Shown here: positions 1,099 through 58,157 of the stretch, one piece after another
Numbering within the stretch: the stretch's first letter is position 1
Layout: each line of letters opens with the position of its first letter
Assembly: GCA_946965045.2 (NCBI GenBank)
Contig: OX337233.1
Coordinates: 3,224,001-3,288,000, forward strand
Direction of reading: 5' to 3'
Length of the DNA stretch: 64,000 bases
From: Epithemia pelagica
Lineage: Eukaryota; Protista; Bacillariophyta
Translations under genes and position numbers: made by a program
Notes under the pieces: model-generated
Database searches by the model: none
Seen by the model: only the letters and a program-made list of their open reading frames with translations
Told to the model about the DNA's origin: nothing

Positions 1099-1238
1099 AT
1101 GAACACCATAAAGTTTGGAAGTATGCGGGTTGGTAGTTTCGAGCAATACGGTATTGAACGAAACTATTCAGATCTAAATTTCTTTTATCTCTATGGACTA
1201 TTCTGGTCTATCAGTGAGCATGTATCCTTCATATCTTG

Positions 1239-2639
1239 CTATTGAAGAAGTTCGGGTGCAACAAGTTCGTTGCTCTTCTCGATGGGATCCGACCAGGCGA
1301 CGACGACACGACGGCCTTGATCAAACGTTGGTTGTCTGCCATGGGCGGTACGAAAGTTGTCAATCAAAACCAAATCACCCTTTTGCCAACGATTCAATAC
1401 CATATTCTTGTGGACGGCACGACGGATTTCCTGCACTTCTCCCAAAGAAAAGGGAGTTCCATCGCCAAACGAAATGTCCAGACCCATGCGCTGTCCCAAC
1501 AATCCATATTGAATCACGGATTTGATGGAAATGTAAATGGCACGCAGCAAGAACCGGACATCTCTTGTCAGGGAAAAGGAATAGAACAATTCGGCAGGAA
1601 AGCTCGTCCAGTGAAAGACTTGTGCATGATTGAACCAGATAGGATCTTTGGTTTCGGGATGCAACTGAAAGGGCTCTGCCGTGTATTCACTCACAAAGGT
1701 ATCATTGTTGCGCCCTTCCCATCGAACGGGCATGTTCTCTCGTTGTGCAATTTCTTCGACTTGTCGCTTGTTTGTTGTCCCAAAGACCTCGGGCCAGGAT
1801 TTCATGGCTGCCACATCGTGTGTGAAACGAGCGCCCCGTTTATGATGCGTTCGGCGGTATTGAATCTTTTTGGTGGCCAATTTCTGGCGAAGTTGAGGGG
1901 AAATATCGAGAAAGACTTGACGGAAATCACTCAATGCCGTTTCCCCACCCAATGCCTTGGGAGCTTTCAAGGCACTAAAAAAGACGTTTTTGGGAAGCGA
2001 TTCCAAAAAGGACATTTCCAAATGTTGCGCAATGGGATAATGTGATGGAACTTCGGCGGCCGAGAAGACAAAGGTGGTTCCATCTTGCGCACTACGAGGA
2101 GAAGTTCCTCGATATTCATGACTCAAACGGTGAGGCTCGTAAGCCAAAAGTGCATCTTCAACGTCTTGCGCCGTATCAATGTCAAAGTTTCGAAACAAGA
2201 CGGCCCCATATTCCAGTATTTGTTGATCCAACCACGGTTTGTTCTGTCGCAAGAACGACTGCAGAAAATCAAGAGAGGAATCATTTCTTGGCTTGATGAC
2301 GAGGGGGAATGGCTGTTCTTTCCTTGTACCTCCATCATCAGTTTGAAATTTGGAAATTGTCACGTCATGAATGGTTGGTGAAAGCATGGTTATTGATTGG
2401 TCGTCGTTGTATAAAAGCTCGTCTTGTCCGGTAACCAGTTCCGGCGACAAAACGAGAGGACTTGTGAGAAAACCTGGATCTACGTCGGTGTCATCTCGAA
2501 ACTTGTAGGCAAGATTCCAATTTCTTAAACGATGTGTGGAGAATGAGAATGGTTTTGTCACTTGCACTGTGGAAAATGCGTCGGATGACTCCAGGGCTAG
2601 AGCACTCAGTGTAAGAAGCGAAAGGACCCATGTATTCAT
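1239..2639 (-). CDS. TauD/TfdA (SyrP-like) Fe(II)/2-oxoglutarate dioxygenase, copy 1, probably plastid-targeted
   Basis: 466 aa; YGAVLFRNF, YRGTSPR, H-L-E metal motif, GGETALSD, W..GDLVLIDNFRTAHGR; signal peptide ending SSDA-F. Confidence 0.88.
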   Translation of the reverse strand: MNTWVLSLLTLSALALESSDAFSTVQVTKPFSFSTHRLRNWNLAYKFRDDTDVDPGFLTSPLVLSPELVTGQDELLYNDDQSITMLSPTIHDVTISKFQTDDGGTRKEQPFPLVIKPRNDSSLDFLQSFLRQNKPWLDQQILEYGAVLFRNFDIDTAQDVEDALLAYEPHRLSHEYRGTSPRSAQDGTTFVFSAAEVPSHYPIAQHLEMSFLESLPKNVFFSALKAPKALGGETALSDFRQVFLDISPQLRQKLATKKIQYRRTHHKRGARFTHDVAAMKSWPEVFGTTNKRQVEEIAQRENMPVRWEGRNNDTFVSEYTAEPFQLHPETKDPIWFNHAQVFHWTSFPAELFYSFSLTRDVRFLLRAIYISIKSVIQYGLLGQRMGLDISFGDGTPFSLGEVQEIRRAVHKNMVLNRWQKGDLVLIDNFRTAHGRQPTFDQGRRVVVAWSDPIEKSNELVAPELLQ

Positions 2640-3188
2640 GATGGTAGTATGTCTATGCTTGATGTTGTGTTGTTGCTGCTAATGTTGTTGTTGTGCGTTT
2701 GTTGCTTGTTTGTTTTGTGAGAGGAGCGCATCTTGGTTGCGATGGATCGTCGTGGATCCATCCTTTTTGTTCAATACTGTTCAATGTGTTCTTGAGCATT
2801 GTGGATGGCAGCGAATAAGAGCCCAATCGAAATCTGGCTCATGATTTTTGTGGGATAGGCGGCAGTGGGACTTTCGGTCGGCGCGCGAATTGGGGCCAAC
2901 GTCAGACACAGCGCGATGACATCACTCTCAGTTCGTCTCAAGGTTACGACGGTTAACGGTCGATATTATTTTTTCGTATCGCGGACTTCCCTACGAGCTC
3001 GTATAGTCGTATTTGACAATGATCTATTACTGCCTTATGACTGGTTGACTCCAATAAGAAGACCACGTCATTCCTTCTTCTGAACAAAGGTAAAGACAAC
3101 GATTAAGCAGCATCAACCAAGGAAAATTGGCATAACCCTCCCAACGAATATTCTACTCAATTCAGTACGTTTCTAAACTTAAGCCATA

Positions 3189-3803
3189 AGGGCTGGGTAA
3201 GCCGATCCATGTTCGGCTAGGTAGGCTCAGTACAAAACCTACGTAGAGTACATAAAATCAGATAGTACACGTCACGCCGGAAATGGTCGGAATTTCAAAA
3301 AAATGCAAAAACGCTCGACAATGATGGCGAGATCCGGTGACGCCGTATGCATTCACCCATGCATCGCATAACCATCCAACCACCGTAAGTCCTTTGCCTT
3401 TACCCTTGAAATTGTTGTCTAAAATTACAGAAGATTTGCCAAGTTGGCTGAAAAGGTACGCTCATTTTACTGCAGTGATGAAATCGAACGACCGCCCTAA
3501 CTCACTCATTTTTCAAGGGTGCCTCGACCGAATTGAAAGCAGAGTCCCTCTAGTAGTAAAGATTCTTAATCTCAAAGCGGTCGAGTCAAGCTCTATTACT
3601 CAGGAAGTTATGGCCATGGGGGTGATGGCTTCCATCATTGTCGAATGATGGCTTCCGGATTGCACCTTTTCTATCGGTGGCAAGTTTACGACGTGCGACT
3701 CGGTGTGACCATCCGCCCCACTTCTTACACACACGAAAATAGTACTACGTAGGTTAATGTACTGAGCCTACTTAGCCGAACATGGATCGGCTTACCCAGC
3801 CCT
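3189..3803. mobile_element. Non-autonomous DNA transposon (MITE-like) with ~60-bp terminal inverted repeats
   Basis: Left end AGGGCTGGGTAAGCCGATCCATGTTCGGCTAGGTAGGCTCAGTAC matches the reverse complement of the right end (one mismatch in this span). Flanked by TA at 3187-3188 and 3804-3805; no transposase ORF. Confidence 0.85.
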
Positions 3804-5669: not shown

Positions 5670-7070
5670 ATGAATACATGGGTCCTTTCGCTTCTCGCTC
5701 TGAGTGCTCTAACCCTGGAGTCATCTGACGCATTTTCCACAGTGCAAGTGAAAAGACCATTCACATTCTCCACACACCGCCGAACAAATTGGAATCTGGC
5801 CTACAAGCTCCAAGATGACACCGACGTAGATCCAGGTTTTCTCACAAGTCCACTAATTTTGTCACCGGAACTGGTTACCGGACAAGACGAGCTTATGTAC
5901 CACGATGACCAATCAATAACCATGCTTTCACCAACCATTCATGACGTGACGATTTCTAAATTTCAAACTGATGATGGAGGTGCAAGAAAAGAAAAGCCAT
6001 TCCCCCTCGTCATCAAGCCAAGAAATGATTCCTCTCTTGATTTTCTGCAGTCGGTCTTGCGACAGAACAAACCGTGGTTGGATCAACACATTCTAAAATA
6101 CGGCGCTGTATTGTTTCGAGACTTTGACATTGATACGGCACAAGACGTTGAAGATGCGGTCTTGGCCTATGAGCCTAAAGGTCTGAGTCATGAATATCGA
6201 GGAACTTCTCCTCGCAGTGCGCAAGATGGAACGACCTTTGTCTTTTCGGCCGCCGAAGTTCCCTCGCATTACCCCCTTGCGCAACATTTGGAAATGTCCT
6301 TTTTGGAATCACTTCCCAAAAATGTCTTTTTTAGTGCCTTGAAAGCCCCCAAGGCACTGGGTGGGGAAACGGCATTGAGTGATTTCCGTCAAGTCTTTCG
6401 CGATATTTCCCCTCAACTTCGCCAGAAATTGGCCACCAAAAAAAATCGATACCGACGGACGCATCATAAACGTGGTGCTCGCTTCACACACGATGTGGCA
6501 GCCATGAAATCCTGGCCTGAGGTCTTTGGCACCATAGACAAGCGACAAGTGGAGCGAATTGCGCAACGAGAAAACATGCCCGTTCGATGGGAAGGGCGCA
6601 ACAAAGATACCTTTGTGAGCAAATACACGGCCGAACCCTTTCAATTGCATCCCGAGACCAAAGATCCTATCTGGTTCAATCATGCACAAGTCTTTCACTG
6701 GACGAGCTTTCCTGCCGAATTGTTCTATTCCTTTTCCCTGACAAGAGATGTCCGGTTCTTGTTGCGTGCCATTTACATTTCCATCAAATCTGTGATTCAA
6801 TATGGATTGCTGGGACAGCGCATGGGTCTGGACATTTCCTTTGGCGATGGAACTCCCTTTTCTTTGCGAGAAGTGCAGGAAATCCGTCGTGCCGTCCACA
6901 AGAATATGGTATTGAATCGTTGGCAAAAGGGCGATTTGGTTTTGATTGACAACTTTCGTACCGCCCATGGTAGACAACCAACGTTTGATCAAGGCCGTCG
7001 TGTCGTCGTCGCTTGGTCGGATCCGATCGAGAAGAGCAACGAACCTGTTGCACCCGAGCTTCTTCAATAG
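5670..7070 (+). CDS. TauD/TfdA (SyrP-like) dioxygenase, copy 2
   Basis: 466 aa, near-identical to copy 1 with all motifs intact; ~290 bp of upstream sequence (5385-5670) is also homologous to 2640-2930. Confidence 0.88.
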   Translation: MNTWVLSLLALSALTLESSDAFSTVQVKRPFTFSTHRRTNWNLAYKLQDDTDVDPGFLTSPLILSPELVTGQDELMYHDDQSITMLSPTIHDVTISKFQTDDGGARKEKPFPLVIKPRNDSSLDFLQSVLRQNKPWLDQHILKYGAVLFRDFDIDTAQDVEDAVLAYEPKGLSHEYRGTSPRSAQDGTTFVFSAAEVPSHYPLAQHLEMSFLESLPKNVFFSALKAPKALGGETALSDFRQVFRDISPQLRQKLATKKNRYRRTHHKRGARFTHDVAAMKSWPEVFGTIDKRQVERIAQRENMPVRWEGRNKDTFVSKYTAEPFQLHPETKDPIWFNHAQVFHWTSFPAELFYSFSLTRDVRFLLRAIYISIKSVIQYGLLGQRMGLDISFGDGTPFSLREVQEIRRAVHKNMVLNRWQKGDLVLIDNFRTAHGRQPTFDQGRRVVVAWSDPIEKSNEPVAPELLQ

Positions 7071-7584
7071 CAAGGTATGAAGGTTAGATACTGGCTGATA
7101 GACAAGAATATTCTATAGAGAGATAAAGTAATTTAGACTTTTAAGGTTTTCATGCTACGCTTGTCTAATGATGATTCGTTCCTCTTTTCAATTGGTAGAG
7201 TCTAGCTAGCGGAGGTTGTGTAGTAGGCTCGTCAGAGACTTCGTCCATTTTTTCTCACTCCAACATGGTGCAAATGCCAATGAACAGTTTTGCTGTCCAA
7301 TAATGGGACGCAAACTCCATCAGCAGCATCTTGGTGTATCTTTGTAACACCTTTTTCCTTGCCTTTGTGAATGGCAATAGTAGGAGGCCTTACGTATTCT
7401 TTTTCCATGGATGACAATTTATTCTTCTGACTTCTGACTATCATCATTGTCATCTGTTGGGCCCTCTCCGGTCACTTGCTCATAATTTAATCATCTGGAT
7501 GGTATGATGACTCATTGTGATCATCACTGGATGTGTCAGGCATTGTAGAAAGGCTGTTAGGCTGACCCTTTTACGAGGCAATCA

Positions 7585-12615: not shown

Positions 12616-14548
12616 CTCCCTCTGGACCGTATTTGTGTCACGCGCGACCAACGAGTAAAATTAGTCGCCTTAATACATCACGTAGACCCTGGTACAAACC
12701 TACGGGGAACTGGCCGGCTCATTCGGAGTCGAATTTTAGAGATGAACATACCACGAGACACGTGCCTAAAAATCATCCTAGTCTTCAACACCAACTCCCC
12801 ATCGGTATGAACGCTCATTTGTCTCCCTCCACCAGCCACACAAAACAAACAACACGAACAAACAAACCCTTCCTAATATCAAATGCTGTCCTATGGTGAC
12901 AATCAATGGCCGTAGCCCCTGGCCGCCTCCTGTCTCACTTGGAGGTCGGCCAGGTATTCAATAGATATACTAGTGTCATTAGGAGTCTATATGCAAATTG
13001 TTGTTTGAAGGATGTGAGTAGGCATCGGTCACCTCCAGAACAAGGGGGAGCTCTCCTCTCCTTTCAAGTGCTTCCTTGCTCATATGGGGAATTGCATAAT
13101 CATTGCCACCCTCCTGCTCAATAATGCAATTGAAACAAGATTGTAATGTCAGCCAGGTATGATTCAGTTTTTCTCTTGGGTATTCCTCGTAGGCTTTTTG
13201 AACTCCTTCAATCAACAGCTTCTCATCCGATCCAACAATCAAACTATAGCTTTGGATTGCTCGAAAGAAACCCAAGTCGCATATATTAGTGTCTGGGCTG
13301 TTGGCTGCCTGTGTGTAGAACTCTGCATTGATTCCTTTCTCTTTCATTGCCTTGAGAAACTCAACAAAATGTGGATCATTCTCCTCAATGTGGCTTTTTG
13401 CACCATCTTGTTGAAGTCTGATTTTCCTTCTGTTCCTGTCCCCTTCAGGCCACTTACATAGAATAGCTTCCATCAATTCTTCCATCAGTAGGTCCCTGTA
13501 CACCTTTCTTGTGATTGTCTGGTTTTTCCACACGCGGGTGCCCTTTGGCCTGTTCACGGAAGAGCGTTGCGCCGGAACCCACTTTCCAACAGGCCAAATG
13601 CCAAGCTTTCCATCCCACCAAGCATTCATAGAAGGCACAAAACGAGGTCGGGCGACAGCACATAGGAACATTACCTTGGTGATGTGTGATTTGTGTTTAC
13701 ATGACCGGTATGGCTTTGGTTCATCATCCGTTAGCAAGAAACGCTGTCCGTCGCGCGACACATGAAACCATTTTTCGTCCAAATGAATCAAATCCATCAT
13801 ATCCTGGTACTCACCGGGCTTAGTCTTACTGATAAAAGAAGTTGCCATGAGGTATCTGGACAGCTTGTTTGTTTCTGTGAGGTATGGACGCAATGAGTTG
13901 GTGTGAGACTTCAGAATGCCTCTTTCTTTCCATCGTTGCACAGTTCCCTTGCCAACATCCAACTCGGCGGAGAGTTTTCTCTGTGTTGTTCGACGAAGTA
14001 GAGGGATTGATTTAACGGCCTCCCTAACGATCGGAGACAAATAGATACGCTTTCGTCCGCGCCTGCAAGCCTTGGATCGCATTTCTGGTGAGTTAATTAC
14101 GCCCGACACACGAGTCAGCTTGGCACGCGCCCAAAGTTTACTTATAGAGGTTCTGTGAACACCAAATTTTTTGGCGACATCTGAAATGGCACCATGAGGA
14201 AGCTTGCCATTTTTAGCCAAGGCCAGGAGAAGCACCATGGCACGTCCACGGTCTTGGGGACGCATTTCCCTTCTGTTTGGACCCCCCTGGGCCTCCCCTA
14301 GAAGGGCTGGGTCTTGAAAGGAGTCAGGGGGCATGAACCGGTACGGCAAAGTTCGACAAGTTTTTTTGGTGTGCTTTAGTTCCCTCGTATGGCTCCAGAA
14401 ATGAGAGATCGAACATACAAATTATACATGGAAATGTAGGTCTTGGAAAGACTGACCGATCTATACAATTTTTAGTATAAACGGACATAAGCCCGTAAAG
14501 TTACAGTATTTTTTTTCAATTCGCGACACAATTTCGGTCCAGAGGGAG
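12616..14548 (-). mobile_element. Full-length Tc1/mariner element (plant DD39D/Stowaway-related lineage)
   Basis: TIRs CTCCCTCTGGACCG(T/A)A(T/A)TTGTGTC at both ends; TA duplication at 12614-12615 and 14549-14550; one intact transposase ORF. Confidence 0.95.
12979..14349 (-). CDS. Mariner transposase, DD42D
   Basis: 456 aa; N-terminal HTH (ISDVAKKFGVHRTSISKLW), HLDEKWF, KVMFLCAVARP, QQDGAKSH, NSPDTNICDLGFF; 42 residues between the 2nd and 3rd Asp. Confidence 0.93.
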   Translation of the reverse strand: MPYRFMPPDSFQDPALLGEAQGGPNRREMRPQDRGRAMVLLLALAKNGKLPHGAISDVAKKFGVHRTSISKLWARAKLTRVSGVINSPEMRSKACRRGRKRIYLSPIVREAVKSIPLLRRTTQRKLSAELDVGKGTVQRWKERGILKSHTNSLRPYLTETNKLSRYLMATSFISKTKPGEYQDMMDLIHLDEKWFHVSRDGQRFLLTDDEPKPYRSCKHKSHITKVMFLCAVARPRFVPSMNAWWDGKLGIWPVGKWVPAQRSSVNRPKGTRVWKNQTITRKVYRDLLMEELMEAILCKWPEGDRNRRKIRLQQDGAKSHIEENDPHFVEFLKAMKEKGINAEFYTQAANSPDTNICDLGFFRAIQSYSLIVGSDEKLLIEGVQKAYEEYPREKLNHTWLTLQSCFNCIIEQEGGNDYAIPHMSKEALERRGELPLVLEVTDAYSHPSNNNLHIDS

Positions 14549-14995
14549 TAGTCGGCAAGGAAGACATGCACTCTTATCCGTGTTTCCATCCTCCTTGGTC
14601 TATGAATAACAACACTGGGATCCTTTTGGAACAAAGAGTGATGCCATTCACCTCTCTAGAAAATGCAGAAAAAAGGGCATTGGAATGAAACTTGACGCAC
14701 TTCATTTAACACGACGTACAATATTATTCTACTCCTAGTAGGAGTACTGACTTCTGCATCCGTGCATGTTGGGTAGAACCTCGACCACGGCTTGACACTA
14801 TATCTTTCGTATGCTTGTCGAGAAGAATGAAACTTAAGGAGCTGTTCCACATTATAGAAAATGCCCGCAATTGTTCGCCCATTAGAGTCGCTCCGCCACC
14901 ATGGTTTTCGTCCAGCATCCAAACCCATACATAAACTATATGGAATGTACTTGTGTGACACGGCATTCTGTTGTGTGATTCCTCATGATGGTTTT

Positions 14996-16754
14996 TTATC
15001 GTTCAAAATTGGCCAAGATATCTTCTCCGACAATCATGGTTTCACTGGACAAGACGGGCAGATAAATTTCGCCGCCATTGTTGGCATAATCGCGTCGTTG
15101 ATGGGCCACCCAGGGTTCACTGGGATGCAATTTGGTCATGGCACCCAAAATGGGAAAGTACGAGGTTCCCGACACGTACAAGTTTTGAAAGTGGTAGGCC
15201 GTTTCAAAGGAATTGGCAAAATCCATGCGTTCTTGTCGTCCCCGGACATTCTGCTGTCCCGCCGCCGATACCTTGTCGGTCAAGTCGGGATTGAGCAAAA
15301 TGACGGGCCGATCGCCGGCCGCCTCCACCATGCCCTGCAACAGTGGGATAATGCTACTGTCGGTACCCACCATGGATTGGGGCGCCAGCAAGACAAAGAT
15401 ATCATCTTGGTGTTGGATTATTTCACCGTCCTCGTCTAGTTCTTGATTGACCACGTGCTCGGGGCCAATGGCACCAAAATTAATGTAATCGCCCACCATG
15501 CCCTCATTGGCTTCGCCCGATTCCGATTGCCAATCCATCATTTGCATAATTTTGGCCACGCCATTCAATTGTTTGGGGACGCCGGTAAAAATGCCTACAT
15601 ACGAGAAGCAGCAACAAGAACAAGACGCACAACAAAAGTCAGTGTGTGAGAAAAACAACACTCGAGTCGTTGGACCGTCACTTTCTGTCCACCATTGGGT
15701 CCCATCCAAACACCAAAACTCATCAACACACACACGGTCACGTACCGACTCCCATACTGCCCTGGACACAGAGTCGGACGCGGACATTTTCTTCGGCCAG
15801 TTTGATACAAATGGACCGGGCCATTTCCAACAGCGTTCCAATGCGATAACTGTCCATGGCGGGATTCAATTCGGGAAATTGGGCCACCACTTGCAACCGA
15901 TGGCTCATCGTGCCGTGACTGCAACGAACGACGGCATCACGGACCGCTTGGGCGGCTTGATCGTAAAAGTATTGACGGACATAGCGATTGTGTGGAACTT
16001 GATTCAAGTACATGTTTTCCGGCAATTTGCCAACGCCGGCGCCGCCCAATTGCGTCGCCAATTGAATGAGTTTGCCCGTCACGGCGGCATCGCCGACCAT
16101 CCAACACAGACGATTCAACCGACGCACAATGTCGTCCACCGGCAAGCGCGTGGCATCGTCGGCGATGGGCGGTAAGGTCGTATATCGCCGTCGTCGTTCC
16201 GGAATGGGATGGGCATTCAAGTCGAATGTGACGGTTTCCAACACGTCCGGTCGATTGCGGCGTTGCACCAGGACGGAGAGAGTGGCATTCTGCGAATTAA
16301 TGTCGGTGAGGGAGGCCGATTCCATGACAAAGGATCCACCGGAACGACTGTTGGATTTGGCCATTTCGGTACCCAGAGCCGAAAAGGCTTGCGCAAACTT
16401 TTGGAGGGTCGACGAATGATGCTGATTCATGTAGCCCAACAGAAAGGTGAATTGATCTGGTTCCAAGAACGACACCACGGGAGGAGGAGCCTCCTCACTA
16501 CTACTGGTAGTGGTTGTCTTGTCCGTTTGGGTGCCTTGATCGGTGGACGACTTGCTCGACAACGACAACGGCATTCCTCGAGACAGAAAGGACAAGTGTT
16601 GTGATGGTGACAGTCCAGAGTCATGATAGGTCTTCCAGGAACCAACTGTCTGAAAGGCCTGCGTCGTTGTAGGCAACAAGCCACTCAACAAGACGAGTGC
16701 GACGAGAGAACCAGCAACATGTTTGGTGGTGGTGAAACCACTTTGCTTCTTCAT
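14996..16754 (-). CDS. Plastid-targeted protein with DUF2470-like and DUF1995-like domains; intron 15595-15745
   Basis: Signal + TQA-F presequence; YMNQHH (DUF2470-like). C-terminal FPELNPAMDSYRIGT, VQGSMGVG/IFTGVP, RPVILLNPDL, GRQERMDF (DUF1995-like). The GT-AG intron joins ORFs 15738-16823 and 14996-15841 in frame. Confidence 0.75.
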
Positions 16755-20112: not shown

Positions 20113-22947
20113 ATGAGAATGTCAGTGGTGGTTGGCATACTGACCGGTTCGATTCCGGTCTTGTTGCATCATGGCACTTATTGTTGTTCTGCCGACGAGT
20201 CCAACCGAATGTACATCAACGAGAGCGCTGACCATATTGGAAATGCCACACGAACCCACGACAGGATACTGAGTCGTGAGGACCGAATGGCCATCCGCAA
20301 GAGAAAAAAGCGAATGTTGGAATGGTTTGGAGACAACGATGACGACGAACACGTGGCAGCCGCATCCTCGGTTGATGCTCGTCGACAATTCATCAAACGC
20401 CTTTCCAATGCCGCCAAGCAACCCAAACGGCCTCGTCGAAACAAGGAAAGCAAGTCCTATTCTTCATCATCGTCACGCGACAGTTCCCGGTATCATCGTC
20501 ATTATCATTCCTTTCCACAAGAGAACAATGAACCATCCTCGTTGACGACAACTCACATTCCATCCATTGCTCCGGCACAAGCCGTGGATGTGTTTTCGAA
20601 ACACCACTCCGTCACATCCCCTCAGATTCACAACAACAACAACAACAACCAGAACACTGATCACAATGTCTTTGGCACGGAAAAGGTGGCAAGTGTACCG
20701 TCTCCCAGCATGTTTCAAAGTGACAGTAGCCAGTCGAGTCCATACACCTATATCATTGTTCATCAAGGACGAGGAAAAAAGGAAAAGTCCACCAAGGACA
20801 ATGACCGTGGCAAAAAGGAAAAGACGCACAAGTACATTTATTTTCCGCCTGTGCAATTTCCATCCCGACCGTCGTCTCCTTCCAATAATAGTACATCCCG
20901 TCCCGTTCCTACTGGACCAGCGCCGAGTGGGGCTGCACCACAATCTCCTCCCTCCTCTTCCTCTTCCTCCTCGGTGGCCCCCAGTTCGTTGCGACCCGTC
21001 TTGATCCAAGAGCCACCCAAGTATCAAGCCACGTCGCCGTCCGTCTTTCTCACTTCGGTACCGACTACCAAGCCCACTACCAAACCAACGACAAAACCAA
21101 CAACGTTCTTCACACAAGTGCCAACGACCAAACCCACAACGACACCTACCACGGAAACAGAACTTCCAACGACAGCCCTTCCATCCTTGCCCAGTCCGGT
21201 GCCGACTACCACCACCAAAACTCCATCACGAGGACCAGTCACAGTGCCTCCGGCAATCAGTCCAATCAGTCCTCCCCTATCGACATTGCCTCCCACCATA
21301 CCACAACCATCACCACCGCCACCAACCTCATTACCTCCTACCAAACAACCCATCACACCACAACCATCACCACTACCTCCTCAACCAACCTCTTTGCCTC
21401 CTACCAAACAACCAGCTCCCGGACCCACGCCACCTCCCATTAAAGTCTCTACACCTCCTCCAACCTCGCCGCCGCCGACCAAGCAACCGACCAAGCAACC
21501 GACCAAGCAACCAACGCCCCGACCCACAACCCGGCCTCCCACAAAGAGTCCTACACCTCAACCGACACCGAATCCTACCAAGCAGCCCACGCCCCGACCC
21601 ACAACCCGACCTCCCACCAAACAGCCGACGCCGTCGCCGACACCCCAACCCGTTGTTGGGCCCACGCGACAGCCTACTCCCAATCCCACCAAGCAACCTA
21701 CTCCTAGACCCACCATGGCTCCCACCAAACAGCCAACACCACAACCGACACCCAATCCCACTAAACAACCTACTCCTAGACCCACCAAACAGCCAACTCC
21801 TAGAACCACCATGGCTCCTACCAAACAGCCAACTCCCAGACCAACACCACGACCCACTCCTAGACCCACCATGGCTCCTACAAAACAGCCAACTCCTAGA
21901 CCCACTATGGCTCCTACCAAACAGCCGACACCCAGACCAACACCACGACCCACACCGGCTCCTACCAAGCAACCGACTCCCCGACCCACACCACAACCCA
22001 CTCCTAGACCAACACCACGACCTACTCCTAGACCAACGGTACAATCGGAATTCGACATTGAATTAATGAATACAGGAACCGTTCGAGACTACGACGCCTT
22101 GGTTCGAAGTGTAGCGAGACGTTGGGAGCAAGTCATTGTCAACGACTTGACACCCCAAGAGTCTCCGCCATTTGGGAACGATTGGTTTCGTGGACGGCTG
22201 CTCCAGACGGCCAACGGTCCAGTGGACGACGTGCTTGTGGGCTACCAATTTGTGCCCATTGATGGTCCGGGTGGCATTGCGGGTAGCGCAGGTCCTCTCC
22301 ATACCCGTTTTGCGGGCGGACGACGGGTGAGCAGCATGTCGGGCTTTCTGGAACTGGATGTTGCAGACTTTGCGCGATTTGACGAGGGAACGGCACGCAG
22401 CCTTCTCTTGCATGAAATGGGACATGCGTTGGGGTTTGGAACATTTTGTCCCAACAGTGGAAATGGCGGCATATGCTTTTGTTCCTGTCCGGATGAGACT
22501 TTTGAATACACGTGCAGTGACGCCAGGCAAGCCTTTAATAGTCTCGGTTTTAGTGGCCCATTGTTGTTGGAAAGTGAGGGTTCGAGTGGCGTCATTTGTA
22601 AGCATTGGGAATCCTCGCTGTTTACCGACTTGACGTGGACCGAAGTCATGGAACCAAGTGCCCGAGCTCGAAAACCCGAGCTCTTGACGGAAATTACCAT
22701 TTCGGCCATGGGTGAAATTGGAGAATATCAAGTCAATCTCGGTGCGGCCGATCCGGTTCCCCAGTCGGCCAGTGTCAAGCCACTGCAGTACAGTGCCTTG
22801 CCAGGTATGTCCTATCAGGCCTTTCATGTGGGAGAAGATGGATTTGGTATTGAATTACTTGACGACACGGCGGACGATCAGAGTGTGATTGTGAAAGATT
22901 TCCGATCTCCCCTCGATAACGTATTTTTTCATCCAAACACCACATGA
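20113..22947 (+). CDS. Leishmanolysin-like (M8) protease with long [10 protein letters not shown] repeat stalk
   Basis: 944 aa; [19 protein letters not shown]; catalytic domain colinear with the 17379-19511 paralog. Confidence 0.85.
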
Positions 22948-34755: not shown

Positions 34756-34822
34756 TTCGCTGTTTTCTGGCCCCCCGAAGGAAGGGGAGCCCCCCACACA
34801 CACATCCACAAAAACGCGCCAC
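34756..34822 (+). repeat. 67-bp dispersed repeat, copy 1
   Basis: Identical to 56869-56935 (TTCGCTGTTTTCTGGCCCCCCGAAGGAAGGGGAGCCCCCCACACACACATCCACAAAAACGCGCCAC). Confidence 0.95.
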
Positions 34823-34907
34823 GCCTAGGAGTCCCCAACTCGAATAGTGGTTTTCCATCAGGCCACAACAACAGCAACGCATTCTGATCCAGGGAATCCA
34901 GAACGCC

Positions 34908-36377
34908 ATGGCCAATAACGAGGTGTGGGTAAGATGGAAGGACTCTTCTGATGACTGGTTATTTGATACTGTCACGGATCTGAAAGATGATGCGGAAATC
35001 AAGGACCTGCGTAAAGCGTTTGTGAGGCAACAAAACCTTCAAGGTCAGCTTTCACCGGCAGAGGTACAAGTTCGCGAAACAACCGTCCATGGTGAGGACC
35101 GTCTCAAGGCGAGCAGCCCATTGGTGACCTATTTTGTGCCTCCCACAGGTTGTGTTCCGGAGCCCGGAAAAAGCGAGGATACTGCTTTGTTTCTGACCGT
35201 TCCGCGGATTGCTGCTAGAGGTACCAATGCACCAGCGATCGTGCTGCAAGAACCGCTTTCGCAACAACCAAGTCGCTGGCGCAAGGTCTCCGGGGCAATA
35301 TCTCGACCAAAAACCCACGCTGGTGCCCGTTACGAGCTGTTCAAATTGGCGTCTTCTCTTAAAGGATTATATCCACCAGATCTAGATGCAAATACGGCTT
35401 TTGTCACAGAGGCGAGTGATAGTGACCCGTTCAATCGTTCGATCATTAAGTTTTCTGTGGTGTTTAGCAAGGTTTTTCGGGCTGGCTATTTTGTGGACAA
35501 CTTGAAGGCTTATATTCTTCGCAACAACGGGGATTTACAGCTGGTGGACGACCAACAGAACATCGTGCGGGACTTGACCTTATCAGAAATTGACCCCTTT
35601 CCAGTGACAGTCGAAAACATGGTTCTAAAGACTCACTACGAACCACAAAATGGAGAAGCGGAACCGGGTTCGCCTCTTGTAGACATGATATTGGATACTC
35701 GATCAAGCGACTTCACAATGGATGTCACCCTTCTATCAATAAAAGACACCACTTTTCGATTTCAACGGATTGAGAACAGTGCTTCTTTCACGTTGGCTGA
35801 GGCGGAATCAGCTCACATCTTCCCCAGTGCCAAATGTCACGGAGTGTATGAATGGCTTGATACACCCGACTTCAACCGCCTTGCGTTGAGTAGAGATGTC
35901 CATCTGAACTTTGATGGAACTGGACGGGGAAGAGGAAAGCGACGGAAAACAGTGCAGTCCTTTGCGATTAGGCCTTTGCGAAATGCCAACACTGAATTTT
36001 CCACCTGTATCATTGACGAATGCCATTACTACATTATCCCATTGGAGTTGGTATTTAACAGGAATGAAATTGCAGAGGCTATTTTAAACAAGCTTGAAAA
36101 AGGCGCGGCTCTCTACAAATACCCAAACGATCGGTGGACGATATCGGGGGCTGATGTTCAAATATTCTATCCCAAGAATAACAAAAATACTCTCGTTACG
36201 GAGGAGTCTGAGGACGGGGACACTATCCTTGTGACAGCCATTCCTGGTGTCGACGACCTTAGTGAATGCTGGTCAAATTCTGCTAACTTGTACGAAGTGG
36301 AAGCTGCTGAGATTTTGGAGAAATGTCTCCTTTGGAATTATCAAAATGCCCTGCAGTCATGGAGGTTGGTAGGGTAA
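34908..36377 (+). CDS. Crinkler (CR)-like protein with C-terminal HNH endonuclease domain
   Basis: 489 aa, intronless. N-terminal ~100 aa VWVRW...IKDLRKAF...PGKSEDTALFLTVP resembles CR header domains; AESAHIFP...FNRLALSRDVHLNFDG matches the HNH_2-type pattern. Confidence 0.65.
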   Translation: MANNEVWVRWKDSSDDWLFDTVTDLKDDAEIKDLRKAFVRQQNLQGQLSPAEVQVRETTVHGEDRLKASSPLVTYFVPPTGCVPEPGKSEDTALFLTVPRIAARGTNAPAIVLQEPLSQQPSRWRKVSGAISRPKTHAGARYELFKLASSLKGLYPPDLDANTAFVTEASDSDPFNRSIIKFSVVFSKVFRAGYFVDNLKAYILRNNGDLQLVDDQQNIVRDLTLSEIDPFPVTVENMVLKTHYEPQNGEAEPGSPLVDMILDTRSSDFTMDVTLLSIKDTTFRFQRIENSASFTLAEAESAHIFPSAKCHGVYEWLDTPDFNRLALSRDVHLNFDGTGRGRGKRRKTVQSFAIRPLRNANTEFSTCIIDECHYYIIPLELVFNRNEIAEAILNKLEKGAALYKYPNDRWTISGADVQIFYPKNNKNTLVTEESEDGDTILVTAIPGVDDLSECWSNSANLYEVEAAEILEKCLLWNYQNALQSWRLVG

Positions 36378-50440: not shown

Positions 50441-50900
50441 TGGATTATTCGTCTGAGTTCAGTATGAACGGGACGGGTGGGCCGGAAGGCTTGGGGTCTG
50501 GGGTGGGAATTTCCAGAAAAACCAGCTGTTCCGAAAACGGACGGACACCAGAGTAAAAAGTACAATTGAGCAAACATGGCGGTTGATGAAACGGTTAAAT
50601 ATATATGGCAATGATATAGCAATGCAATACGAGCAGTAGGTGCTTGGTTTTTCCTGGCAACGCGTGCCTGGAACTCCCAATTTCCATGCCCGCGCACCAT
50701 TTTCTAACCCCGCGCGCAAATTTGTCCTTAAATGTCATTGCCACCAAGACAAAGGCAACAATAAGTAAAATGTCATACCGACACCCATTCTTCTTGACCG
50801 GTAATGGAATTTCCCTTCATTGGATTCCCACCGACAATCACTCTAGAGGTGCCATCTTTGACAAGAACGACTCATTGAATGAAGAGAGAAGAGGACGACC

Positions 50901-52433
50901 ATGTCTACCTATGAGAAGACTGTGTGTCTGAACCAGGACCCCCACTATGATCGATTCCTAAAGGACTCGCTTCGTATGGGGTCCTTTGTCGTCATCAAGC
51001 ACGAAGGGAAAGAACACATCGCCCGTCTTGAATGTCGACAGATCGATATAGATGACGACAACCCCGATGAGTACGAGACCACCATCCGTCTCCGTCTGTT
51101 CCATCCACTTTTCAACCGGAATAAAATCGAGTGTAAGAAACCAAAACCACCCAAACATTCATTCGCACCTATCTTCTCAGGCCCAGGTGCCCAACAAGCT
51201 GAGCTCTACGAATCGTCGGATCGTTTGTGGATTTCTACCTCGAACAAAAATGACAACCCGAAGATTCTTTTCCCCGCCTTTGTTTTCACTGTTGACGAAT
51301 TTTCCCTCCCTAAGAACGCTTGGGCCATTGGTTTGCATAATGTGTTTGTTGTTCGCACGTGGGAGATGATCGATTACGAACATCGTTCTTGCCGCAAAAT
51401 CAAGTCCTTGGTTCCTCTACCTTCGATTGCTGCCCTCGGCTTCCCCAACGACCACCCAGATTACAAGAAGTCAACCAGAAGCGTCGTCCCTCAACGCTGT
51501 TTACACGAGTCCTTGTGGAACGGTTTGTATGCTTTGAAGAAGGGACTCAACAAGTGTCTTAATAAACGAACTGGCCAGTCGAACGACAAAGAGGTTGTCA
51601 GCTTAAACGTCGGTCATGTTCCTTTGGAGACAATCCAGTACATTTCGTTGATTTCGAATTACCTTGCAACTGTCCCTTCTCACACTATTACCCTTTCTGA
51701 TTCTTTTTTGCACTTGGACCAGACACTTCGTCGGTCCAAGGTGAAAATTTCATTCAACGCTGGAGTTATTCGGTTCAAGACGCCGTGAGAACTCGACATT
51801 CTCCGGTTGATCCTTGGACCAGGATCGACGTATGGTTTTTCCGAAAGGCGACCTACTTTGGCCGATGGTAAAGACGGCGTCCCTCTTACTGCAGGATTCA
51901 ACATGGCCGTGGTTGGGTCTTCTTCCGAGGAAAAGAAAGAACACGAAGACGATGCTCCACAGCGTCCATTCAAGAGACGTACCATGGAGCCACGTGTCGA
52001 CTTCACCTTCTCACCGTACAACGTCAGGTTGACCGTCGGCTACCAGCGATACGTGTATTCCTTGAAGAATGATGGTCGATTGGAGACGATGCCGCCTTGT
52101 CCCAATCTGACACGGCTACTCCAAGGCAGCGCTTCTGTGGCGCCAATGTTCACTTCGGAATCGGAAAGCGACACGGATGACGAAGAGTCGACCCTTGATA
52201 CTACAACGATGGAATATGCCATCTCCAAGATCAAAGTGGGAGCGCAATTTCTCCACAACGACGAGTCCGTGATGGAGGTTAAAGATATTTACAACGACAA
52301 TGGAGAAACTTACTTCGATTGCAGCTGTGTCGCTGGTGCTGCATTCAAAACCACTGAGTCTATGGAAAACCAGTGGAAATGGGCACGTGTTGATGCCGTT
52401 GATCTCTGGAATGACATTCAAAGCTTTGCCTAA
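50901..52433 (+). CDS. Putative transposon accessory protein with N-terminal BAH-like domain; one in-frame TGA at 51786-51788
   Basis: ORFs 50901-51788 and 51807-52433 share a frame (FKTP*ELDILRLILG). N-terminus GSFVVIK..HIARL...LRLFHP...ELYESSDRLWI...ILFPAFV resembles BAH. Confidence 0.55.
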
Positions 52434-52480
52434 TCATTCCCTTTTATTAGTAATCGTAGTTTGCGACCAACTTTCATTCT

Positions 52481-55400
52481 TTATGAGTTTCCTACTACTA
52501 TAGTTTCCTCACCAACCTCGTCTACCTCATCATCATCATCCTCCTCGTCATAATAATCCTCGAACAATGTTGATCCGTGAACAATCGTTCCCTCTGTCGA
52601 AGGAACAGTCCCTGGATCATAGAATTCCCATTCACCGAGTTCAGCATCATCCTCCAAATCTGTTTCGTCCAAAGCACATGCTGCAACCCTTTGGCAGAAC
52701 TCCATTGTCCCTCCATTGTCAATCACCCAGTTCTTCCGACTGGACCTAATACTACAGTTGTTCCGCTTGTTACCCTCCGTAATAGCTTTCCACGAATAGC
52801 CACTTAGGAACACCATACGTCGTTGGAGCCATCGTGCCATTGGTTCTAGACGAGTCTGTCGCCCTTTCCCCTTGTTGACACTTCCACCCCTTTGGGTCCT
52901 ATGGAAATAGAAAGTTTTAAAGAGCGAGTTAAAAGCTGAAAGGAGGGTGAGGAATCAAGAAACAAAGGATTCTAGACAAGAGGGTTCACGACCTCACACC
53001 AACCAACTTACCTTCCCACCCCTGCTGTGCATGGGATGACAAGTTTTTCCAATGCAACAAGTACTCATGCACATGGCCGCTACCTATCAGGTGAGCGTAG
53101 TTTGTTACTCCATGCTCACCATTGAGTTTCACCCAGTCTGCGAAGAAAAAGTCGGCAAAGCGTTGGTAGTTCTTGATTTCTTCATCAGTCAAGTCACCTT
53201 TCTGCCTGAGAATCAGCATGGACTGTTGATAATTGTCCACACACTTGGACCATGTGCGTCTGTCTTCCTCTGAAGCGATGCAGATGTTGATTAATTTATC
53301 AAACTTGGGGATGAGTTTACGGATACGGACGTTGTCCATCGTGATCGGACTGATCTCTCGTTTAGACTCCTTGTACGGTACCTTCCAGTGCGTGGGGAAG
53401 TCGATGGAACCCAACAGGTGATGAGACATTGCCTCATTGACCATCTGAATGAACTTGTTGCATCGATCCGTGACGTTGTTACGTTTGTCCTTTGGTAGAG
53501 CTTCCAAAACATGAGACAGTTCCTTGTTCGTAGCACTCTGCAGTCCTTTCCTTAAACACATGGTCAGTATTTTGAGACCCATCCTTTTCTCCATATGTGG
53601 GATACATGGGACAGTATCCAGTAGGTAAACCAGTGCTGTCGAATGCATCGAACCCTTGAAGTCGTCGATTAGCTTTTTGGATTGGTAGTACTCCCACTCT
53701 CTGACGTGCGACGACTTCAATCGACGTTGGCGTTCTTCAATCGAACCACGCAGGTCCAGCTTCCGGACGAACAGGTCATTTGTCAGGCTACGTGCGTATT
53801 CTTGTCGCTGGGGTTGAGATGCCTTCGCCAAGTCGAAATGGATGCATTGAAGATCCGTCCTTTGTTGCTCCGAAGGTACGTTCCGAGGGTCAATCTTCAT
53901 CGTTAGTTTCGAATCGGCCCATATCCGGTTCAGATTCTTCTGGATGATGGGCATATCTTTTTGAAACTGTCTCATTTCGTTCTCCAATGTAGAAAGATGG
54001 GTTTTCGTACACATGGTATGGTGATAACACTTCCAATTAGTCCGTTTGTGATGACCCAAGTGCTTACACAAAGTACAGGACGGTTCGTCTTCGATCTTGG
54101 GCAAGTGCAACCGACCACTTTGTACAGCGCATTTCGAGCAGGAAAATTTGGCTTGCTGGGCTGCTCCTCCTCTCCCAAGGAGTTTCCATTCGCAAGACAT
54201 GTCACAATTAGTACATATGCGTAATGGCCACACTCCAAATTTCGTGGGAACTACAGTCATTGCCGCTTCACGGACCTCATGGATCATATTCCTAAAAACG
54301 GAACGAACCAAGCCTTTACTCTCCGGACGGCAAACACATACAATTGGAAAAACACCATTCCTTGACTGTGCCAATGGATGAGTTGGGTCGTTGAACTTCA
54401 ACCCACCCAAGGTATGGCTTAAGTTTTTGGTGAATAACGCACCGTCAAGACTCTGTGCCAGGCGGATTGGTCGCCACCTTGCGTCTCCATGCAGACAACT
54501 ACTAGCTAGGAGCATCGTTGCCATGACATCCGCGGCCCGAAACGTGAACCCCTCAGAGCCATCGTTCTTGTTTCGCATTAGTTTGTATGGACATAAGTAG
54601 CTGCCAAATTTTTCAACCGCATTGGCGCATTCTTGTAGGGCAGAGGTGCTTGGGAGAAGTGTTCTTACATGGGCAATGCCGTTGTTTTCTACTGAACGTA
54701 AGACTTCTATTCCGCTGAAGTTTAATCTTCCTCCCATGATGTCCATCTTCTTGAGTATGTTATACGGCGTAAACACATACTCACGCACGTACTGTCTGAA
54801 TACACTGTAAGTAGACTCAAACAGCAATCCACTATGGATTGTTTTGTCGATGCACAATTGAGCAACGTCCCGAAAAAACTCACCCGCTGCCCGACTTGTC
54901 GCTTCCATGTTTTGAGTTCTCGACTCAAGGACATAGCGAATGTGATCGACGAGTCTCTTTCTATCTTTGGCATAGTATGCTGACCGAGGTAACTTCTCTC
55001 CAGTTTGTTCAAAGTCCTTGCGTTTCCAATAGCGAAGTTCCTCATTTTTGTTCTTCAGTTTCCGTCTTGTTTCTTCCAAATCTGTTTTGTATTGCTCTAT
55101 TGACTTGAGGAGATCAGTAACCTGGGACGAGAGAGACGATGTCTTGTCTTCGTGAGCTCTGAGAATCGCGTCAAGGGATGGCTCGTTTGGTCTTTCGCCG
55201 TCACTTAAACCGGCCTGGCTTGATTGTTGACTATTGATTTGTTCAGTGTCGTCAGTCGAGTTGTCATTTTGGATGTCGAGAGGTTCTATGCTATCAAGTT
55301 TGTCCAGCTTGTCGTCTTGAGGATCAGGCCATGGAGGTAGGTCATCAAGGCTTTCATCATCTGAACAATCCTCTGACAAGTTATCTTCATTGCTTTCTTC

Positions 55401-56284
55401 AGGAAAGGGTTCCGAACAATCTGAAAGGTTACGAAAAGGTATATTTTCTATGTCATTAACTGTCTCTCGAATAAGCTGGGCTTGATAGTCGGGCGGATTA
55501 CTATCTTCCTGTTCGGCAAACATGATATCTTCGAGTGATTCGGGTTCTGTTTCTTTCTGCATGGTTTTGGCTGGAGGAGAGGGGGGGGGGGGGGGGGGGC
55601 AACCGGTTGGTCTTCAATGGGGACACAGAAAAGGCTGGATGGAGGAGCTTCAGGCAAATGCTTCGACTTATCGTTCAAATGTGTTGGACGATACCAGTTT
55701 GTATGATTGGCTGTACACCGGTATCGGCCACCTTCGGCCAGTCTATTGATGACGCGTGAAGATCCTGGGGTTTCCTCGTCATCTGCTTTCTTGCAACGGC
55801 TGCACAAGAAATGAGCAGGATACTTTGTCTCGCGATCACGCCCATATACAAAGCATGGTACGTATTCCAGTTCACTGCAGTCCATGATGATTCGGGCTAT
55901 GCGTGCTCGTTCTACAGAGTTTGATTCGCAGGGAGTGTTCGACTCGTCTCTCTTTTGACGTGTCTGTTGGTTCGGGGAAGGAAGGAGATTCATATTTTCG
56001 TTTGCCCACTCACGTATTTCAGCTTTTTCTTTGTCTTTTGCGGCGTCGATGAGACGAGCCGATTTTCTGGTTGGTTTGGTTGGTTCTTCATGTTGTGGTG
56101 GGGCCAACTTGGTAGGGGAATCGACGCGATTACCATCATCTGCGGTGTGGGAGTGTATGGATGCCGTTTCTTCCTTGCTGGGTGTAACAATGAGCCGTTG
56201 AGCTTTTGGTTTTGGTGGGCGGCGGTTGGGTGGGCATGATGTCGATGCAGCCCTCCTGCGTTTCTTCTGCGTAAGGCGGGGCAT
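52481..56284 (-). mobile_element. RAG1/Transib-like DDE transposase gene (~1,240 aa); frameshift at G19 (55581-55599), intron 52936-53011
   Basis: In RAG1 order: LLPSTSAL, FRAADVMATML, QSLDG (D1), SRNGVFPIVCVCRPES, NCD (D2)...FSCSKC, PHMEKR, TNYAHLIGSGH, QQGWE/AFNSLFK (E). The GTAAGT...TTTCAG intron joins to ORF 52481-52840. Confidence 0.78.
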
Positions 56285-56601
56285 GGGAGACGTTCACTGA
56301 CTTCAGACAAATTCAAATAAGAACTTGGACTGCTACTTATGTACAAAAAGCTCTCGTAGTTGCTCTGGTTCTTGGTAACAGAGGTGCCATTGAGACAATA
56401 CCTTGGAGGCAGTTCTTCATAAAGTTGAACATTCAGGTGAACGTAATTGACGATTAAACAGCGACTACATATTTATATGCTCTTAGTGTATGTATATATT
56501 TTAAACTCTGGGCACGCTATGCGCGCTCTGAGAGAGGGGAAATCGATGAGATGAAGTGAAATTCCAATGATCGGTTTTGTGTAGCCTGTAACTCAGTCAA
56601 T

Positions 56602-56690
56602 TTTCAATGAATTTGTCATCGGATACTTCAGTGCAATAGATCAGTTCTTCATCTATTGCACTGAAGTATTCGATGACAGTTCCATTGAAA
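56602..56690. other. Long hairpin (28-bp core stem, 9-nt loop)
   Basis: 56614-56641 pairs with 56651-56678 with one G-T pair; 56602-56609 pairs with 56683-56690. Confidence 0.9.
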
Positions 56691-56868
56691 TTTGGGTCGT
56701 CGGGGTCGTGCACAAAATTGTGAGTCGTTTAAGGAGAATTTTGGGCTCTTATATTTAACAAAAATTAGGCAATACTTTATTTCAGAGTAAAGGGGGGGGT
56801 TTCTGATGCGACATTTGGAAATTTTGGGGTCGTCTTGCGCGCACAACATGCACCTACTGCTCGTATTG

Positions 56869-56935
56869 TTCGCTGTTTTCTGGCCCCCCGAAGGAAGGGG
56901 AGCCCCCCACACACACATCCACAAAAACGCGCCAC
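56869..56935 (+). repeat. 67-bp dispersed repeat, copy 2
   Basis: Identical to 34756-34822. Confidence 0.95.
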
Positions 56936-58157
56936 TCCTACCTAGATGCGCCTCTAGGAGCCACAACCCTCCGATTGCGGGGGTACCTCCCGTCTGCTGT
57001 CCATACGGTTATTCTCAAATTTTCCTAAAAAATGTTAAAATTATTTCTGGCAAATTTCTTTCGATTTAGCACATTATTATAACGTCCAAGCCAACTGTAA
57101 TAACTGGCTTCGCCCTATTGTGTAGCCGCTTCCGCTCATGCATGACCGTGAGCCGTGAGACTTGACGAGACATGGACAAAGAAATCTACAAGCCCATTTT
57201 GTACTCAATAGTCTATTGTTTCAGAAGCGAGTACTCTTTACGCAGTAGTGGATCTAGCTTCACGGAATCATCACACACGCACACCAAACCATGAAATACA
57301 CACACATGGTGCATGCACCTCTAGAGGAGTATCAAAACAAGCTCCTGGCACTTTGTCTATGGGAAAGATAAAAGCATAGTCCTCTACTAATTTAGGCTTC
57401 CTGCTTCCTGGGCTTACATGATGACGCTGTCAACCAGTGCACTGGTTGATTGTTCATTGCACTAGTGGATTGTGATGTTTCATGTTGTCATCCTTCCTTT
57501 GATGCATTCCACCTTCACTTGTGATCTAGGTGGATGGTTTTGACCATAGAGTTGTCACTTTGGTCGTTCGTCCGGCTGGGTGGTTTTCTTTTGGTTTTTG
57601 GTGTGCTCACTGCTCATGGTCGTCTTTTGTGGTGTTGCTCGAAAAGTGAGACGATTCTTGGCCCCATGTGCCAGCAATACAAGGCGTGACCGGCGCGTCG
57701 ATTTCGAACGACTGAAGGGAGGCTGGCGATATCACCCGGCTGGTGCTTTGGGAAAAAATACGAGACAATTTTTTTCCATTCGGATGACGGACGAACAAAG
57801 GTACCCCCCAATCGCACCCAATCTGGCAACACCATGTTTTGCACCAGTCACTCCGATCTACTCCCCGGCTCCAATGGCACAGTTCATCACTGCCACGGAC
57901 ACAGCCCCACTCCTTTGCGAACTCACCGCTTAGGAGTCCCACTTTACCATAGACAGTAACATACTAAAAAGGAAGTACCCCCAAGCATGGGGTGAGTCCA
58001 ATCACGCGTGATTGAATGCACTTCGTGCATTTGTCTACTCACCCCCACGGCTCGACCTGGTCTCTCTCGACTCTGATACAAAATTCCGAAAACCACATGC
58101 AACACACCCTCATTCATCACGGTGGTGGAGGTGCGGTGGTCCAGAACATCTTCTATA

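Follow-up and report, generated by a model that had tools for sequence, protein, structure and literature searches.

RAG1 is the enzyme that assembles vertebrate antibody genes, and accounts of how V(D)J recombination originated usually follow two lineages, Transib and RAG-like (RAGL) transposons, with the question of how and when RAG1 acquired RAG2. Transib elements are 3–4 kb in length, carry one gene for a protein of ~700 amino acids (aa), and are defined by 5-bp duplications and by ends that start with CAC and contain an A-rich nonamer (CACAATG-23-AAAAAAATC; PMC1131882). In a homology survey that covered over 680,000 genomes (Tao et al., 2022; PMC9435367), Transib was identified in bacteria, fungi, plants, ctenophores, and other animals, without diatoms being named in the text, and a RAGL element (AanRAGL) was identified in the pelagophyte Aureococcus anophagefferens. 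The latter was found by its homology to RAG1 and RAG2, and it has RAG2L in the same orientation as RAG1L, CACACCC ends, and 5-bp duplications (PMC9435367). In this study, a 64,000-nt stretch of the genome of the diatom Epithemia pelagica (contig OX337233.1, positions 3,224,001 to 3,288,000; referred to as the window) was analyzed, in which a 6,244-bp element with two genes (50625–56868) represents a deep lineage of RAG1-fold transposases with its own ends and its own partner gene. This lineage is previously undescribed; full-text literature searches combining Transib or RAG1 with diatoms revealed no description of this family. An earlier note made from the letters of the window had proposed a transposase of the RAG1/Transib family at this place.

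Core fold and active-site residues of the transposase

The core of the larger gene (669 aa; window 52989–54995, minus strand) was modeled with AlphaFold from a 66-sequence alignment, which yielded a predicted local distance difference test score (pLDDT) of 93.3 and a predicted template modeling score (pTM) of 0.86. When this model was compared with the PDB by Foldseek, a check against RAG1 and HzTransib that the earlier note had put forward, the 46 best chains were confined to RAG1, HzTransib, and BbRAGL (best E 4.8e-9), and the next match was Hermes (E 0.017; template modeling score, TM, 0.12). Structural alignments with VIA-align showed that the whole core fold is common to the model, mouse RAG1 (PDB 5ZDZ, 6CG0, and 4WWX), and amphioxus BbRAGL (6B40), with 424–504 residues aligned at Z scores of 19.7 (BbRAGL) to 21.2 (RAG1, on which model residues 70–669 fall at 460–970). 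The corresponding Z score for HzTransib of Helicoverpa zea (6PQX and 6PQN) was 20.9 over 382 residues, and the P element and Hermes reached 13.4 and 7.2, respectively. With the nonamer-binding domain (NBD) included, model residues 1–669 span RAG1 393–970; the match thus begins at residue 393, and the diatom protein, different from Transib, is predicted to contain an NBD-like N-terminal helical part. In the model, the complete RAG1/Transib core fold is matched, including the DNA-binding helices, pre-RNase H, RNase H, ZnC2, ZnH2, and C-terminal domains. RAG1 clusters also ranked first in protein language-model features of the ESM Atlas (0.95, with 188 of 256 features shared).

Using this core as a phmmer query against 1.84 billion cluster representatives, we identified a transposase family of 1,159 matches at E ≤ 1e-3, including 536 at E ≤ 1e-10. 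Its named members are solely diatoms (Epithemia clementina, Attheya, and Seminavis robusta) and are annotated as hypothetical proteins without a Pfam domain, while the remaining members come from ENA assemblies and Joint Genome Institute (JGI) metagenomes. The D/D/E and zinc residues, on whose conservation in homologues the earlier note had made its proposal depend, are invariant: an alignment of 38 sequences contains no exception at D184, D265, E661, C286, C289, C307, C310, C323, H467, H635, and H641, and H325 is nearly invariant. The codons of the residues compared with RAG1 below are located in the window as follows.

54446–54444, minus strand: codon of D184
54203–54201, minus strand: codon of D265
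54140–54129, minus strand: codons of C286 and C289
53093–53091, minus strand: codon of H635
53075–53073, minus strand: codon of H641
53015–53013, minus strand: codon of E661

We take the zinc ligands of RAG1 to be C727, C730, H937, and H942 (structure 4WWX). The catalytic residues of RAG1 are D600, D708, and E962 (bioRxiv 10.1101/698332). In the diatom model, D184 is located on the first strand of an RNase-H-like sheet, D265 just after the fourth strand, and E661 on the last helix. Like RAG1 and BbRAGL, the diatom protein is very probably an RNase-H-like DDE enzyme. A profile of the C-terminal block searched against the PDB gave 10 matches below E 10, all of which were RAG1 (E 0.6–4.8). In this alignment, H635, H641, and E661 fall on RAG1 H937, H942, and E962 (N-Y-x-H, H, and E on ...TNYFH(937)KTLAH(942)...GNE(962)SGNKLF), so that the two C-terminal resemblances recognized by eye in the earlier note, the His pair and E962, agree at the level of single residues. 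Although the single E-values are marginal, we regard the C-terminal link to RAG1 as convincing because the matches are exclusively RAG1 and three functional residues are in exact register. The spacing between H641 and E661 (20 residues) is the same as that between H942 and E962 of RAG1, and the 21 residues from D265 to C286 are close to the 19 that separate D708 from C727. The core fold and active-site residues that appear to be shared with RAG1 and Transib are the two grounds that support a RAG1/Transib-like mode of working for the diatom enzyme.

Two further Cys/His groups described in the earlier note were recovered in the family. Compared with RAG1 and BbRAGL, the diatom enzyme has an extra CCCH cluster (C307, C310, C323, and H325) in the zinc-binding region. 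The residues of the N-terminal Cys/His domain (C144, C161, C164, C190, and H194) show few or no exceptions in the family alignments, and both this domain and the coiled-coil linker are unlike those of RAG1.

Element ends, copies, and the convergent partner gene

Two copies that are ~98% identical to the window copy, L001 and L006, were found in ENA assembly ERZ21939226. L006 matches the window exactly from 50625 to 56868 (98.3% identity) with unrelated flanks on both sides, and contigs of three DNA runs switch to another flank exactly at 56868|56869. The element is bounded by 22-bp inverted ends (50625–50646 and 56847–56868) that begin with CAATACGAGCA and are 95% complementary. In L001, the match to the window extends past the inverted repeats into a further 75 bp and 1,113 bp of flank, and the two copies therefore represent a duplicated locus. 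The 7.4-kb block shared with L001 (50551–57981) was also considered as the element and was rejected, as L006 and the conserved ends set the borders at 50625 and 56868. The features of the element outside the transposase gene are listed below.

50625–50646, no strand: terminal inverted repeat on the side of the partner, CAATACGAGCAGTAGGTGCTTG, with a T-rich tract next to it on the inside; the match to L006 stops exactly here
50901–52433, plus strand: partner gene of ~500 aa, convergent on the transposase gene, with a private nonsense codon at 51786–51788
56598–56694, no strand: near-perfect palindrome with 44-nt arms and a 9-nt loop, upstream of the transposase start and conserved in L001
56830–56868, no strand: transposase-side end, comprising the 22-bp inverted repeat at 56847–56868 and the internal box ATGTTGTGCGCGCAAGACGAC

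The palindrome at 56598–56694 may be a regulatory or secondary-structure feature.

The assembly also provided the ends of ten diverged paralogues, whose proteins are 44–72% identical. All of these ends start with CAATAssAGCA, and on the partner side the first 11 nt are kept in eight subfamilies. A box, ATATnGTGCGCGC, is present at positions 20–33 in nine of the ten transposase-side ends, whereas a T-rich tract is found instead in the partner-side ends. The ends are therefore bipartite and mutually unlike, as they are in Transib, and are not similar in sequence to recombination signal sequences: no CAC-initiated heptamer with an A-rich nonamer beyond a spacer was found in them. The start with CAC and the 5-bp duplication that the earlier note had considered were thus not borne out, as the ends start with CAATA and no target-site duplication abuts the ends in the eight complete elements, which is unexpected for such chemistry. 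In three of these eight, a 5-mer direct repeat occurs 2–6 nt from the ends (simulation P ~0.004, calculated post hoc), and duplication scans with offsets gave no consistent pattern. In one copy of subfamily B (L007:9047–9547), ~500 nt of unrelated DNA is located just inside the transposase-side end, and its other end is also mutated.

The distribution of copies makes it highly improbable that the two genes are a domesticated host pair, or the product of segmental duplication only, without mobility. The similarity between L006 and the window covers exactly the 6,244 bp from one inverted repeat to the other and stops there, subfamily B is present at at least three loci with other flanks, and the terminal 11 nt have been kept in at least ten diverged subfamilies, although the flank shared by the window and L001 does indicate locus duplication for that pair, and the missing target-site duplications and the low copy number per subfamily would also suit an immobile gene pair. 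Moreover, the private frameshifts and the stop codon in the copies represent decay rather than purifying selection on a host gene.

A convergent gene of ~500 aa is present at every locus examined in the assembly (L002–L008, L011, and L012), with identities of 34–58%. In L002, L003, L004, and L006, the partner homologues are single open reading frames (ORFs) of 475–510 aa at the same position and are 56–63% identical. Seminavis robusta also has a convergent gene at the same place (562 aa); its hhalign comparison with the partner profile gave E 0.013, at which homology is not established. The TGA at 51786–51788 of the window partner is CGA in both sister copies (L001 and L006). Deamination of methylated cytosine would be expected to cause such a change at a CpG site, a hint that the element is methylated.

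Language-model features of the partner point to BAH (0.85). In a Foldseek search with a low-confidence partner model (pLDDT 53), the 50 best PDB matches of the N-terminal domain were all BAH domains (best E 1e-4), and no sign of a RAG2-like Kelch propeller was seen among the fold matches of this model. The N-terminal domain of the partner thus possibly resembles a BAH nucleosome/histone reader rather than RAG2. A convergent second gene inside the element is also known from ProtoRAG; different from the RAG1/BbRAGL systems, the partner of the diatom element is predicted to be BAH-like instead of a RAG2 Kelch/PHD protein.

At one locus (L008:1–7558), three tandem genes encoding Kelch beta-propellers (371–403 aa) are located just outside the element end, beyond the inverted repeats. 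These genes look like a host gene family and are mentioned here because RAG2 is a Kelch protein.

Placement of the family and proposed mechanism

Besides the missing target-site duplication, several results weigh against a RAG1/Transib-like reading of the element. No Pfam RAG1 match was obtained for the ORF pieces of the window, the 38 full-length members, or the 66 core members, even at E 10. Whole-core profiles searched against PDB sequences did not find RAG1, and the sole sequence link to RAG1, that of the C-terminal block, has an E-value of 0.6 per chain. A profile of the RNase H and ZnC2 block gave no RAG1 match in the PDB either, and equating D184/D265 and the Cys pair with D600/D708 and C727/C730 draws on their invariance and on the topology of the model. 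Searches of PDB sequences with phmmer and with whole profiles returned coiled-coil noise or nothing, and identity to RAG1 and Transib in the structural alignments is 10–15%. The AlphaFold model of the partner, built from 11 sequences, is poor, as its pLDDT indicates, and no Pfam match was found for the partner, BAH included. Chemistry, activity, and hairpin formation are proposed by analogy with known enzymes. Finally, in a shape search of the ESM Atlas, Transposase_21 (CACTA) clusters matched the model with TM 0.53–0.56, compared with 0.51–0.58 for RAG1 clusters. Plant CACTA transposases are thus comparable to RAG1 in their match to the model, and fold alone cannot place the family beside Transib. 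The same search also recovered unnamed fungal, rotifer, and cnidarian clusters, and many uncharacterized proteins with 10–14% identity rank before RAG1 among AlphaFold DB clusters.

These matches raise the question of whether the family might belong, as a divergent lineage, to the CMC group (CACTA/En-Spm, Mirage, and Chapaev), in which case its likeness to RAG1 would reflect a fold shared across the clan. The predicted structures of Transposase_21 clusters align with the model over 430–470 residues, on a par with RAG1 clusters, Chapaev cores have been called weakly RAG1-like in a 2026 preprint, and the PDB holds no CMC structure that could rival RAG1. In language-model features, Transposase_21 (0.87, 126–130 features shared) and Plavaka (0.84) are included, but RAG1 is far ahead with its 188 shared features. 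Pfam scans of the ORF pieces, the 38 full-length members, and the 66 core members gave no Transposase_21 or KDZ match, and none of the 66 matched Transposase_21 even at E 10. The element ends are unlike those of CACTA, no 2–4 bp duplication was seen, and the family agrees with RAG1 in its C2...H2 ligands and in their distances to D and E. We therefore consider a CMC origin unlikely.

If the element were a canonical Transib or RAGL transposon of merely divergent sequence, it would have the same fold and the same catalytic and zinc ligands, would fit the bipartite, unlike ends and the ProtoRAG-like convergent gene, and would have a precedent in the RAGL element of Aureococcus (PMC9435367), but it would not be expected to start with CAATA, to lack an abutting duplication, or to have a partner that matches BAH-like domains without a Kelch propeller. 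It is also at odds with the failure to match Pfam RAG1 and with the low identity in structural alignments, and we regard it as very unlikely. Compared with Transib, the diatom element is longer (6.2 kb), has two genes, and encodes a transposase of ~1,240 aa; compared with RAG1 and BbRAGL, its CAATAssAGCA ends take the place of CAC heptamers, and no 5-bp duplication was seen. AanRAGL shares with it a stramenopile host, a two-gene layout, and unlike bipartite ends, whereas the diatom family has no RAG1/RAG2 sequence homology, no RAG2L in the same orientation, no CACACCC ends, and no 5-bp duplications.

Taken together, the evidence supports a RAG1/Transib-like family that forms a distinct deep lineage and is not a member of Transib. 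We prefer a distinct branch to a Transib because the DNA hallmarks of Transib are absent, neither Pfam nor searches of sequences for RAG1 with hidden Markov models detect the family, and CACTA matches its fold. This is also the placement that the earlier note had favored, and the fold match, the C-terminal residue register, the invariant D/D/E and zinc ligands, and the diatom hosts agree with it.

The analysis established the gene structure, the homology, the fold and conserved residues of the transposase, the ends of the element, and its presence in multiple copies. Positions 50625–56868 very probably hold a copy of a diatom DNA transposon that has two genes and moves by cut-and-paste, a mode of transposition also used by Transib. 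In the mechanism that we propose, the larger gene would encode a DDE transposase with a core of ~660 aa and RAG1/Transib architecture, in which helical DNA-binding modules are followed by an RNase-H-like catalytic domain (D184 and D265), a large zinc-binding insertion where C286 and C289 may pair with H635 and H641, and the helix that carries E661. By analogy with RAG1 and HzTransib, this enzyme would bind the two unlike ends, nick at the border between end and flank, free the element by forming hairpins on the flanking DNA, and join the 3′-OH ends to the target. The partner, which has stayed in the same position while the proteins diverged by at least 56%, might act as a cofactor of separate origin and, in the way that RAG2 serves RAG1, guide or license the cutting or insertion steps on chromatin.

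Whether this represents a third independent RAG-type system, in which a RAG1-fold transposase, so diverged that sequence searches for RAG1 or Transib would miss it, needs a convergent BAH-type chromatin reader and perhaps uses a variant chemistry that leaves no abutting duplication, is more doubtful, and we suggest it tentatively. A large diatom-wide family with a full RAG1 core and a stable partner of a different kind suggests that the pairing of a RAG1-fold transposase with a chromatin-binding helper may have arisen more than once. If true, this would be a parallel to RAG1–RAG2 of separate origin, and the role of a partner for a RAG-type enzyme would become testable in a second, independent system, for which the intact paralogues and defined ends in the same genome could be used in biochemistry. 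With this family, the RAG1 fold is known from more hosts and in more diverse forms than before, and the family indicates that whole branches have been missed by sequence-based surveys of Transib and RAG.

Gene structure of the window copy and its surroundings

Three ORF pieces on the minus strand encode the transposase in the window: 55448–56284 (278 aa), 52986–55562 (858 aa), and 52481–52840 (119 aa; open upstream to 52933). As read from the sequence, they are one gene (56284–52484, minus strand) of ~1,240 aa, the length given in the earlier note, and both breaks are read through in intact paralogues. The parts of the gene are as follows.

52481–52483, minus strand: transposase stop codon
52484–52935, minus strand: last exon, with the helix after the catalytic E, the conserved RGG...ARWLQRR block, and the acidic tail, assigned by frame and homologue consensus
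52936–53011, minus strand: GT-AG intron of 76 nt, assigned by sequence, homology, and the intron-less Seminavis homologue
53012–55575, minus strand: main coding block, with an acidic and coiled-coil linker followed by the RAG1-like core (54995–53013)
55576–55580, minus strand: private 5-nt insertion TCTCC, from the three-copy alignment
55581–56284, minus strand: N-terminal coding part with the Cys/His cluster and poly-Pro, aligned to P0161, P0156, P0160, and P0002

The intron has GT at 53011–53010 and AG at 52937–52936, and its removal fuses ...HAQQGWE to A-FNSLFKTFYFHRTQRGG...MARWLQRR, followed by the acidic tail that the earlier note had described and that is seen in the translated last exon. 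The junction consensus of 38 full-length homologues is QQGWEAxNxLxKxxYFRRTxRGG...ARWLQRR, and the annotated homologue of Seminavis robusta is a single exon across the intron position. As the three runs carrying the stretch are DNA contigs and contain no splice joints, the evidence for splicing comes from homology; because the consensus of the 38 homologues reads across the junction in the same way, this comparison confirms 53011–52936 as a true intron.

At the second break, the 278-aa ORF is homologous to the N-terminal part of intact paralogues (44–51% identity), in which the poly-Pro stretch runs directly into ...LEDIMF.... An example of an intact paralogue is found at L002 10001–13755, with its partner at 13802–15229. 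A three-way alignment with L001 and L006 revealed five extra nt (TCTCC, 55576–55580) in the window copy, just 3′ of a run of 19 C (55581–55599), which shift the frame; the frame of L001 is continuous at this site. The earlier note had joined the pieces through one GT-AG intron and one homopolymer shift. The intron stands, supported by the homologue consensus and the Seminavis gene, while the shift, which had been put in the right place, is a private 5-nt insertion. L001 has private indels of its own (+4, +1, −1, and −10), as does L006 (−10 in the C run and −11). The C run encodes poly-Pro, is shorter by 10 C in L006, and is an indel hotspot among the copies. The window copy is recently broken and, with the 5-nt frameshift in the transposase and the CGA>TGA stop in the partner, is either dead or non-autonomous.

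Several features were observed around the element. A 72-nt segment that starts exactly at the transposase-side border (56869–56940) recurs at 34756–34827 with 98.6% identity, upstream of a Crinkler-like gene near 35 kb, and L001, beyond the shared 7.4-kb block, contains a paralogue of this Crinkler-like gene region (window 34827–35227). A high-copy repeat begins at 56966–57000, just outside the element, from where the summed contig depth rises from ~200 to 3,500–31,000 and many different loose ends are found at 56965–56967. In L005, ORFs with a PALP domain (6036–7178 and 21757–22656) flank a 14-kb stretch with a subfamily-B element truncated at the partner side, and this pair may be a gene that was disrupted or duplicated around insertions.

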